Positions 3,301 to 4,581 of a stretch of DNA of 8,413 bases are shown piece by piece. Source of the stretch: Prasinococcaceae sp. CCMP 1430 (taxonomy: Eukaryota; Plantae; Prasinodermophyta); assembly GCA_013416795.1 (NCBI GenBank), contig RQSC01001053.1:17705-26117 (forward strand), read 5' to 3'. Under the pieces are notes generated by a model that worked only from the letters and a program-made list of their open reading frames with translations, did not search any database and was not told the DNA's origin. Position 1 is the first letter of the stretch. Every line of letters begins with the position of its first letter. A program made the position numbers and the translations under genes.

Positions 3301-4581
3301 GGGTCTGAAGGGAGGATTACTCCCAGGCACCAGGGGTATGACGTGACTGATGTCACGCTCAGGAGGTAGCCCATCTGGCAAGTCCTCCGGGAATAGAGAC
3401 CCATACTCATCCAATAAGCTCTGGAGAGTTGCCGACGACATGCAAGAGGTGGACCTTGAGTCCGTAGCCGGTTCCGTGGTATCCTTAACGATCACCAACG
3501 AGAGCCGCTCTCCCCTTTTAAGCAGACGCTTGACCTGCATCGCACTCAGCATGTGAGGATGCGGGTCCTCAGCGCTTAGTAGAGATGGCTCTAAGCAAGG
3601 TAGAGTCATCTTGCGTCGCCTGAGGGTCACTATGGCCTCGCGCTTCGCGAAGTCTAGGTGGGCCCTTCTTTGTAACAACCATGAATTACCAAGGATAAGA
3701 TCGTACGCTTCATCCATGGCAATCACCTTGCAAGGCACCGTGTCCATGACATTGCCCGAGGTTGAGGTGAACTGTACCAGCACTCTCAGTGTGCCCAGTA
3801 TTCGAATACTCGAGCCATCCCCGAGGGTGACTACTTGATCAGTGGTTTTATAACTCACGCCCACACGATTGCAATATCTCAGCGATATGAAATTATGTGA
3901 CGCCGCCGTGTCCATGATCAAACGAGCATTCGCACCTGCAACCTTGCTTGGAAACTGCATGCAAAGTTGGCTGTCAAACAGTCCTCTCAACTGTGATGGG
4001 TTGGGTGGGTCATAAAAGACCAAGCATGGAACGGGACATGCAACCAACTCAACTTTGCCCTTTGAACTCACACGCAAGACCTGCTTTCCACGAGGTATCT
4101 CCGCCAGAAGCTGGAGACGATTTCGCAAAGACCTTGGTAAACGTAAAGTTCGAGGCAATAGGATCACGGCTGATGTGTCAGCCGGCGAATCAGCTTTTTC
4201 ACTCTGATAAAGTTTGAACAAGGCATCCTTGCGACTCACTCCGGACAGATTCAACCAACTACATTGGCTAATCAACCGGGGTACCACAGGATTACCCGTA
4301 AACCTCAAAGCCTGATCGCTAGGAACAAGAATCTCACGCGAGGCGAGAACATCTACCAAGCCATCCAACGCTAGGTGATGTCTCTCACAGATACTCGCTA
4401 GATCACTAGGAGTTAGCTCGATAGCTACCGCCTCCTTAGTTCCTGATCCTCTAACCGCAGCCATCCTAGCCGCAGCCAGTGGAGAGTCAGTGCTAACCTG
4501 TGCTCTAGGTTTAACACTGGCCTCTCGACAAGGGAACCTGGGCCCCAACTCCCCGTTCGGAGCGGGCCCCTCTAGTTTCCC
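340..4581 (-). CDS. pol: Pol polyprotein (Dam-like domain - aspartic protease - RT - RNase H - integrase - GPY/F - chromodomain), probably made as a Gag-Pol fusion by -1 frameshift
   Basis: The open frame is 340..4791, but the track's start at 4791 is TTG inside gag. The functional portion likely begins at the slippery site (4581). Motifs: [48 protein letters not shown], D-D(35)E, WIGPF, chromodomain. Confidence 0.96.
   Translation of the reverse strand, partial: [1413 protein letters not shown]
433..603 (-). other. Chromodomain (group I-like, aromatic cage residues present)
   Basis: [12 protein letters not shown]...[33 protein letters not shown], ORF-track aa 1397-1453. Confidence 0.93.
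652..909 (-). other. Integrase C-terminal GPY/F (SH3-like) module
   Basis: GQQVLL...[26 protein letters not shown]...[13 protein letters not shown], about aa 1295-1380. Confidence 0.85.
1057..1764 (-). other. Integrase zinc-binding domain and DDE core
   Basis: H1025/H1032/C1062/C1065 (LHKTPYSGH...TCPQC); D1095 (ISMD), D1156 (IVSDRD), E1192 (GQTERVN), with 35 residues between the second D and the E. Confidence 0.95.
2083..2433 (-). other. RNase H domain
   Basis: [42 protein letters not shown]; the catalytic D-E-D-D set is present. Confidence 0.95.
2707..3309 (-). other. Reverse transcriptase domain
   Basis: [59 protein letters not shown], YLDD (2859-2848), LKYLGH. Confidence 0.98.
3637..3963 (-). 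other. Retropepsin-like aspartic protease domain (DTA variant triad)
   Basis: [15 protein letters not shown], flap-like VTLGDGS, and DLILGNSWL; typical retropepsin spacing. Confidence 0.88.
4003..4434 (-). other. Degenerate phage-Dam/DIRS-type N6-adenine DNA methyltransferase-like domain, upstream of the protease
   Basis: Colinear motif series IELTP / LVDVLASR / LRFT / SWLNLSG / [10 protein letters not shown] / IPRGKQVL / PVPCLVFY, compared from memory with WxTP / DxxAS / YFT / WxNPPY / VVxLxPxRT / IRGRxxF / PSxLVVF. Alignment by eye only; no HMM run. Confidence 0.65.
4540..4581 (-). promoter_or_regulatory. -1 programmed ribosomal frameshift signal: G GGA AAC, 5-nt spacer (UAGAG), GC-rich hairpin
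   Basis: The heptamer 4581-4575 is in gag frame (CAG GGA AAC TAG) and pol is in the -1 frame (GGG AAA CTA). The GGGCCC arms at 4569-4564 and 4545-4540 close an inner GCUCC/GGAGU stem. Confidence 0.85.

Follow-up and report, generated by a model that had tools for sequence, protein, structure and literature searches.

What is a stretch of about 145 amino acids doing between Gag and the protease of an algal Ty3/gypsy retrotransposon? The question is raised by 8,413 nucleotides of DNA (hereafter the window) from Prasinococcaceae sp. CCMP 1430 (GenBank assembly GCA_013416795.1, contig RQSC01001053.1, positions 17,705 to 26,117), which hold such an element. A first-pass annotation, made from the letters of the window, had read the segment at 4003-4434 as a degenerate domain resembling the DNA N6-adenine methyltransferases (Dam) of phages and DIRS elements. 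The minus-strand translation of this interval is exactly the peptide it quoted, some 145 residues of non-protease sequence do lie between the gag stop codon (4574-4572) and the protease (Pol amino acids 282-389), and its positions for DVLASR (4353-4336) and SWLN (4260-4249) are correct. The observation is confirmed, and our analysis supports its interpretation, none of the outcomes named there as counter-evidence having been obtained: the segment is best read as a Dam-derived domain with a class I methyltransferase fold and a broken catalytic motif, kept as a non-catalytic module, a reading to which we give a probability of about 0.8. Coordinates are those of the window throughout; all features described lie on the minus strand, and amino acids are numbered along the pol open frame.

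Homology to DNA adenine methyltransferases

The domain consists of an N-terminal half (Pol amino acids 120-173, 4273..4434), which occupies the position of the S-adenosylmethionine (SAM)-binding half of intact relatives (helix A, strand beta1 with motif I, strands beta2-3), and a C-terminal half (Pol amino acids 174-267, 3991..4272) with strand beta4 and its motif IV remnant, a helix, the strand TSAVILLP, and a hairpin ending in VFYDPP. Relatives were retrieved with Pol 110-620 as query, its protease and reverse transcriptase serving to pull them in, which yielded many metagenomic and algal chromovirus polyproteins with alignments reaching upstream of the protease. Two of these, P0113 and P0049, show a weak match to Pfam Dam just upstream of the protease. 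A jackhmmer search over the fetched proteins, seeded with the P0113 segment and with the window excluded, assembled a family of 36 members, all of which have the domain at the pre-protease position; a separate search seeded with P0113 residues 20-185 added seven further members only.

The hidden Markov model (HMM) of this family, built with the window excluded, gives Pol 174-267 a score of 63.7 bits (E 1e-15 at Z=1e6), whereas none of 2000 shuffles exceeded 8.2 bits, and an HMM of the C-terminal half scores the window at 54.9 bits. The Dam-like motifs that had been noticed in this part of the peptide (SWLN, the helix, and the motif after it) are thereby borne out and lie far outside chance expectation. 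Ten members with intact or near-intact motifs, among them P0113, P0125, and P0128-P0130, match PF05869 (Pfam Dam) singly and at the same pre-protease position (E 6.7e-10 to 8.6e-5), and six of the ten exceed the gathering score of 28.1 bits; when ten degenerate members were compared with PF05869, the best result was a single one at E 0.037. When the HMM is restricted to the ten Pfam-Dam-positive domains, the window still scores 39.6 bits (E 1.9e-8 at Z=1e6), with W-L-N-P-P-F of the relatives set opposite W-L-N-L-S-G of the window. Because this ten-member profile reaches the window, homology to Dam is established transitively for the C-terminal two thirds of the domain, which is the part that alignments to the family profiles cover. 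The module descends from a prokaryotic-type DNA N6-adenine methyltransferase domain (PF05869) that is carried upstream of the protease by a green-algal chromovirus lineage. One relative with an intact NPPF, P0130, has a long Ser/Ala-rich insertion inside its Dam-like domain (residues 544-714); the domain begins at about residue 544 of the 1937-residue protein, which looks like a gag-pol fusion without a frameshift.

Searches with the domain's own sequence were also made. The segment does not reach the PF05869 gathering score of 28.1 bits, a search of Protein Data Bank (PDB) sequences returned nothing except one chance row for an alcohol dehydrogenase (E 0.078), and a word-indexed search with Pol 105-275 against 5.8 billion proteins gave no match among those of polyprotein length; a profile of the family alignment (MAFFT alignment A1, 36 rows) had no match among PDB sequences either. 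A phmmer search of the segment against 1.84 billion representative proteins returned three matches, all of them artefacts in which a 30-residue stretch is summed over tandem repeats (e.g., MucBP). Clusters of bacterial hypothetical and NACHT-associated proteins returned by an ESM Atlas feature search (0.87-0.94) share few features with the segment and are uninformative.

Predicted structure

The structure of the domain was modeled by AlphaFold2 with alignment A1 as input, which gave a mean predicted local distance difference test (pLDDT) score of 78.2 and a predicted template modeling score (pTM) of 0.72; single-sequence AlphaFold of the segment gave an unusable model (pLDDT 40). Confidence in the alignment-based model is high from the motif IV strand onward (pLDDT 84-97) and falls below 50 at model residues 40-61, and a helix at model residues 19-28, in the N-terminal half, is confidently predicted. 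The top structural match in the ESM Atlas is a chlorophyte cluster of which 75% belongs to PF05869 (template modeling score, TM, 0.67 over 145 residues; root-mean-square deviation 3.5), followed by clusters of PCIF1, EcoRI-methylase, and D12 adenine methyltransferases. In an exhaustive scan of 48,161 PDB representatives, almost all of the top 50 structures were class I methyltransferases, led by the KsgA/Dim1/Erm rRNA adenine-N6 enzymes and PCIF1 with Z-scores of 5.9-6.6 over 120-133 residues, values that lie in the "middling" range below 8 and draw their weight from the uniformity of the listed structures. In BFVD, the second-best match is a phage DNA N-6-adenine methyltransferase (probability 0.92). 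The model thus shows a class I (Rossmann-like) SAM-dependent methyltransferase fold, predicted to be kept at least in the C-terminal two thirds of the domain.

Decay of the catalytic motifs

Motif IV of the window reads SWLNLSG (Pol 178-184, 4240..4260) and aligns with vWLNPPF/Y of intact relatives. Two independent HMM alignments and the MAFFT alignment agree on the change from NPPF/Y to N-L-S-G that had been proposed from the peptide: the Asn is retained, and both prolines and the aromatic residue are lost. The (D/N)PP(Y/F/W) loop of amino-methyltransferases positions and stacks the flipped adenine, and loss of activity is therefore expected. Judged by its motifs, the domain is probably no longer able to transfer methyl groups.

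The N-terminal half has changed further. Intact relatives have F-T-L-D-A-C-A-N-D-x-G-x-N-A after strand 1; there MAFFT sets L-A-L-D-G-L-V of the window (Pol 140-146, 4354..4374), in which only the Asp is kept and which, as a column placement without statistical support, is a candidate remnant of strand beta1 and motif I. The ND-G-NA segment that follows beta1 in intact relatives is missing from the window, the half as a whole is 16% identical to intact relatives, and the window gives no match to an HMM of the N-terminal half even at E<=1000. The equivalences IELTP = WxTP and LVDVLASR = DLFASR drawn in the first-pass annotation find no backing in that search, and its motif I at VDVLAS is displaced by the alignment, which puts the motif I Asp at LALDG (4374-4354) instead. 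Its impression that the conserved Asn and Asp of the SAM pocket are lost needs correction in that the motif IV Asn is kept. At the level of sequence, the N-terminal SAM-binding half appears eroded, having diverged past recognition.

Relatives keep the catalytic motif only in part. Among 36 domains (35 relatives and the window), a sample biased towards relatives of the window, motif IV is intact (NPPF) in 5, near-intact (NAPF/Y, NVPF, HPPY) in 5, and degenerate in 26, the window included, and motif I (D-A-C) decays along with motif IV across the family. In an unrooted, quick-mode tree of reverse transcriptase and RNase H, the domain-bearing elements form one supported clade (Shimodaira-Hasegawa approximate likelihood ratio test, SH-aLRT, 95) apart from plant chromoviruses, with intact and degenerate forms interspersed. 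The well-supported branches alone require no fewer than three changes of state, and parsimony counts eight. Since the intact motif matches that of bacterial and DIRS Dam, we read these changes as repeated losses; on this reading of the sequences, the catalytic motif would have been lost independently at least three times in the family.

Selection on the domain and distribution of the element

Selection was assessed by the Nei-Gojobori method on codon alignments of natural pairs of relatives. In the degenerate pair P0035/P0050, the C-terminal half has a dN of 0.20 and a dS of 1.0 (non-synonymous and synonymous substitutions per site; omega, their ratio, 0.20), close to the protease omega of 0.18, and in the degenerate pair P0078/P0084 the proportions of non-synonymous and synonymous differences (pN and pS) are 0.13 and 0.71 (omega ~0.06), with a protease pN of 0.24; synonymous sites are saturated in most pairs, which makes the omega values rough. 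A third degenerate pair, P0094/P0112, has a pN of 0.20 and a pS of 0.82 in the C-terminal half, and in the intact pair P0113/P0124 pN is 0.08 in the C-terminal and 0.22 in the N-terminal half. The excess of synonymous over non-synonymous change in these pairs is unambiguous. In the relatives, the degenerate domain is under purifying selection and is kept as a protein, not as a mere open frame, and it persists across a clade whose reverse transcriptases have diverged to ~40% identity. The proposal of a pseudo-enzyme kept in frame is thereby supported indirectly, through selection on degenerate relatives.

Contigs of two sequencing runs hold a single variant inside the domain, a plus-strand A>T at 4405 that alters the third base of Pol codon 129 (AGT to AGA) and exchanges Ser for Arg. 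It falls in the fast-evolving N-terminal half, and variants among the DNA contigs were too few for a codon-position test. Public runs under at least five different organism labels contain the stretch 2500-5500 with hardly any change (share 0.89-0.94), as does a bioanode metagenome; in a lake-water metagenome, roughly half of the words sampled are present (share 0.54). This wide presence reflects either the same alga under several names or an element that is widely shared.

Possible functions and alternative explanations

We propose that the domain is kept as a pseudo-enzyme with a non-catalytic role. The likeliest such role would be that of a basic nucleic acid- or chromatin-binding surface, or of an adaptor, acting on element cDNA or at integration. 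The C-terminal half is basic (pI 9.85; N-terminal half, pI 4.7), a composition that fits nucleic acid binding. Other candidate roles are that the domain might bind target DNA, read or recruit the N6-methyladenine (6mA) system of the host, or regulate the activation of the protease within Gag-Pol; the first-pass annotation had suggested marking or protection of cDNA, binding of methylated DNA, or action as a decoy. A complex prediction for protease and domain scored 0.00 ("no answer") with a poorly folded partner and is evidence neither way. Because catalysis seems to have been repeatedly lost while the C-terminal half is constrained like the protease, the domain may be a non-catalytic adaptor or reader. 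More specifically, and tentatively, the selected function in algal chromoviruses might be something other than methyl transfer: the domain could bind element cDNA or ApT/6mA DNA, for example, or bring in the AMT1 6mA machinery of the host, whereby new insertions would end up in permissive chromatin or come to acquire it. This specific version is a possibility that we hold well short of an even chance. A working analogy for such a mechanism is the catalytically inactive METTL14 of the METTL3-METTL14 m6A writer, in which a class I adenine methyltransferase fold carries a degenerate (D/N)PP(Y/F/W) motif and is retained under selection for non-catalytic substrate binding or scaffolding. METTL14 differs in being a cellular protein of the MT-A70 family with a partner enzyme, while the domain of the window belongs to the Dam family and to a retroelement.

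Several points weigh against a retained, non-catalytic Dam-derived module. The domain segment matches no Pfam family at E<=1, and its link to Dam is transitive. Foldseek finds no match of the model in the PDB at E<=0.001, the Z-scores of the exhaustive scan are middling, and the incapacity for methyl transfer is read from motifs. Saturation blurs the selection estimates, which moreover concern relatives, the nearest of which is 32% identical to the window in the domain. Finally, in two poly(A)/RNA-seq runs, of each of which 6-13% was scanned, no read fell on the element, a result that does not amount to a test of expression.

The most serious alternative is that the domain is a decaying remnant without a function of its own, i.e., a former Dam domain on its way out, which the element tolerates as in-frame spacing between frameshift site and protease. 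An unrecognizable N-terminal half and the poor model at residues 40-61 would agree with this, as would members of the same reverse transcriptase clade that have no detectable domain, e.g., Haematococcus P0007, P0009, and P0022, and the evidence for selection comes from relatives and not from the lineage of the window itself. However, the C-terminal half keeps the family-conserved positions that give it 63.7 bits, is modeled with a pLDDT of 84-97, and in degenerate relatives has an omega (0.06-0.20) as low as that of the protease. Retention of the domain down to ~40% reverse transcriptase identity, and the intact reading frames of an element whose tandem copies differ at 6 of 605 positions, also speak against decay, and we regard the remnant explanation as unlikely.

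Less probable still is that the domain is an active adenine methyltransferase with a non-canonical catalytic loop. The motif IV Asn, the W-L that precedes it, possibly the motif I Asp (in LALDG), and by prediction the overall fold are retained. However, NPPF/Y has lost its two prolines and its aromatic residue, the ND-G-NA segment is missing, and the SAM-binding half scores nothing, while nearly all DAMs sampled from prokaryotes and eukaryotes have the Asn-Pro-Pro triplet (Fernandez-Moreno et al., bioRxiv 10.64898/2026.05.21.726589, May 2026 preprint). According to the same preprint, even intact DAM domains of transposable elements (DAM-TE) produced no methylation in Escherichia coli. We consider residual activity very unlikely.

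That the segment is instead an unrelated, lineage-specific pre-protease domain, its likeness to Dam being due to convergence or, by chance, to a Rossmann-like fold, could appeal to the modest structural Z-scores and to an own sequence without direct match in Pfam, the PDB, or 1.84 billion proteins, but is scarcely credible and already largely refuted by homologues in the same place that grade from NPPF-bearing and Pfam-positive to fully degenerate, by a Pfam-positive-only profile that reaches the window at E 2e-8, and by a Dam cluster as the top structural match in the Atlas.

Architecture of the element

The pol open frame (4791..340, 1483 codons) encodes, in this order, protease, reverse transcriptase, RNase H, and integrase with a C-terminal chromodomain, an arrangement of Pfam domains that defines a Ty3/gypsy chromovirus, and the reverse transcriptase groups with those of algal and plant chromoviruses. 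The retropepsin-type protease (Pol 282-389, 3625..3948) has its active site D-T-A at Pol 294 and matches RVP_2, Asp_protease_2, and gag-asp_proteas (E 1.5e-4 to 6e-4). Reverse transcriptase and RNase H follow at 2143..3183 (RVT_1, E 3.6e-37; RT_RNaseH, E 9e-31), and the integrase with its zinc-binding domain, core, and SH3 domain, together with the chromodomain, lies at 433..1752 (Integrase_H2C2, 1.5e-20; rve, 5.6e-10; SH3_Tf2-1, 5e-20; Chromo, 4e-16). The Gag open frame (7544..4572) ends in a capsid-like part with one CCHC knuckle (zf-CCHC weak, E 0.022), preceded by a long low-complexity stretch. This frame is open for 990 codons, of which the first ~550 residues (5900-7544) are rich in G/P/S/R/E and without family match, the capsid-like part coming far later. 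G+C content is 58-69% over gag and the long terminal repeat (LTR) and 50-56% over the Dam-like domain and the rest of pol, with a step near 4500.

The pol frame is -1 relative to gag. A canonical -1 slippery heptamer, G GGA AAC in the gag frame (4575..4581), directly abuts the gag stop codon TAG (4574-4572), and a GC-rich hairpin built on two GGGGCCC words (-34.8 kcal/mol) begins 4 nucleotides downstream of GGGAAAC; the hairpin is no better than that of shuffled sequence (z = -1.4). The Gag-Pol fusion would be made by -1 frameshifting at GGGAAAC. A trans-frame linker of ~47 amino acids in the pol frame (4435..4574), without family match, leads from the frameshift site to the Dam-derived domain; in Gag-Pol, this domain would come first among the folded modules of the Pol part.

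The two ends of the window repeat each other. The terminal repeat at 1..605, which comprises the 3' end of pol and LTR sequence, is in register with 7809..8413 (513 of 519 positions match, followed by 85 of 85), i.e., with six mismatches and one 1-base offset, and comparison of the two identifies the second copy as the chromodomain end of an upstream copy and a shared LTR. Because the repeated sequence takes in the final ~88 pol codons (the chromodomain) besides LTR sequence, the window is read as part of a head-to-tail array sharing one LTR and not as a solitary element. A PEG10/Ty3-type capsid gene recurs downstream of pol on the contigs L006 and L008, which carry the relatives P0104 and P0035, respectively; this suggests head-to-tail arrays in relatives too.

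Comparison with known systems and implications

The first-pass annotation had considered a Dam module foreign to standard gypsy architecture, while mentioning similar segments in green-algal gypsy proteins. The module is no longer unprecedented, and its occurrence in green-algal chromoviruses is now documented: Fernandez-Moreno et al. (10.64898/2026.05.21.726589) describe LTR retrotransposons with DAM domains, a "Chlorophyta DAM-chromovirus-like clade" among them, and derive the LTR-borne DAMs from DIRS-borne ones. Their screen used hmmsearch at E<=1e-5, which cannot detect the domain of the window. The catalytic pocket of DAM-LTRs is stated to be preserved, and from this preserved pocket the elements are interpreted as 6mA writers that gain permissive chromatin; the words protease, inactive, and pseudo are not used, and Prasinoderma is not mentioned in the main text (10.64898/2026.05.21.726589).

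Like the Chlorophyta DAM-LTRs, the element of the window is a green-algal Ty3/gypsy chromovirus with a PF05869-type domain and a chromodomain in its polyprotein. Unlike them, it has NLSG, lacks a Pfam match, and is one of the majority of sampled relatives in which the motif is lost. The methyltransferase domain of DIRS elements (PF05869) belongs by ancestry to the same family, but those elements rely on a tyrosine recombinase and have the domain elsewhere, whereas here it lies, catalytically degenerate, between the frameshift and the protease of an integrase-bearing chromovirus. With the PF05869 Dam of phages and bacteria the domain shares the fold and the order of motif I, motif IV, helix, and L-L-P strand; these are, however, stand-alone active enzymes with NPPY, and the window has no match to them at the sequence level. 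The element of the window is a member of the known DAM-chromovirus lineage, in a variant state that lies outside the published description.

Our analysis points to a large, mostly metagenomic radiation of the DAM-chromovirus lineage in which the pocket decayed several times and the domain, the C-terminal half above all, is under purifying selection. If true, profile-based screens undercount DAM-carrying elements, and the benefit of the domain to the element is not catalysis alone. If the assignment to a host in the Prasinodermophyta is right, the lineage reaches the sister group of all other green plants. NPPF-bearing and degenerate domains form a natural variant pair for probing the role of the domain. 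Should the domain indeed act as an adaptor or reader, DAM-LTRs would be "6mA-pathway hijackers" and not "6mA writers", which would explain the inactivity of intact DAM-TE domains in E. coli.

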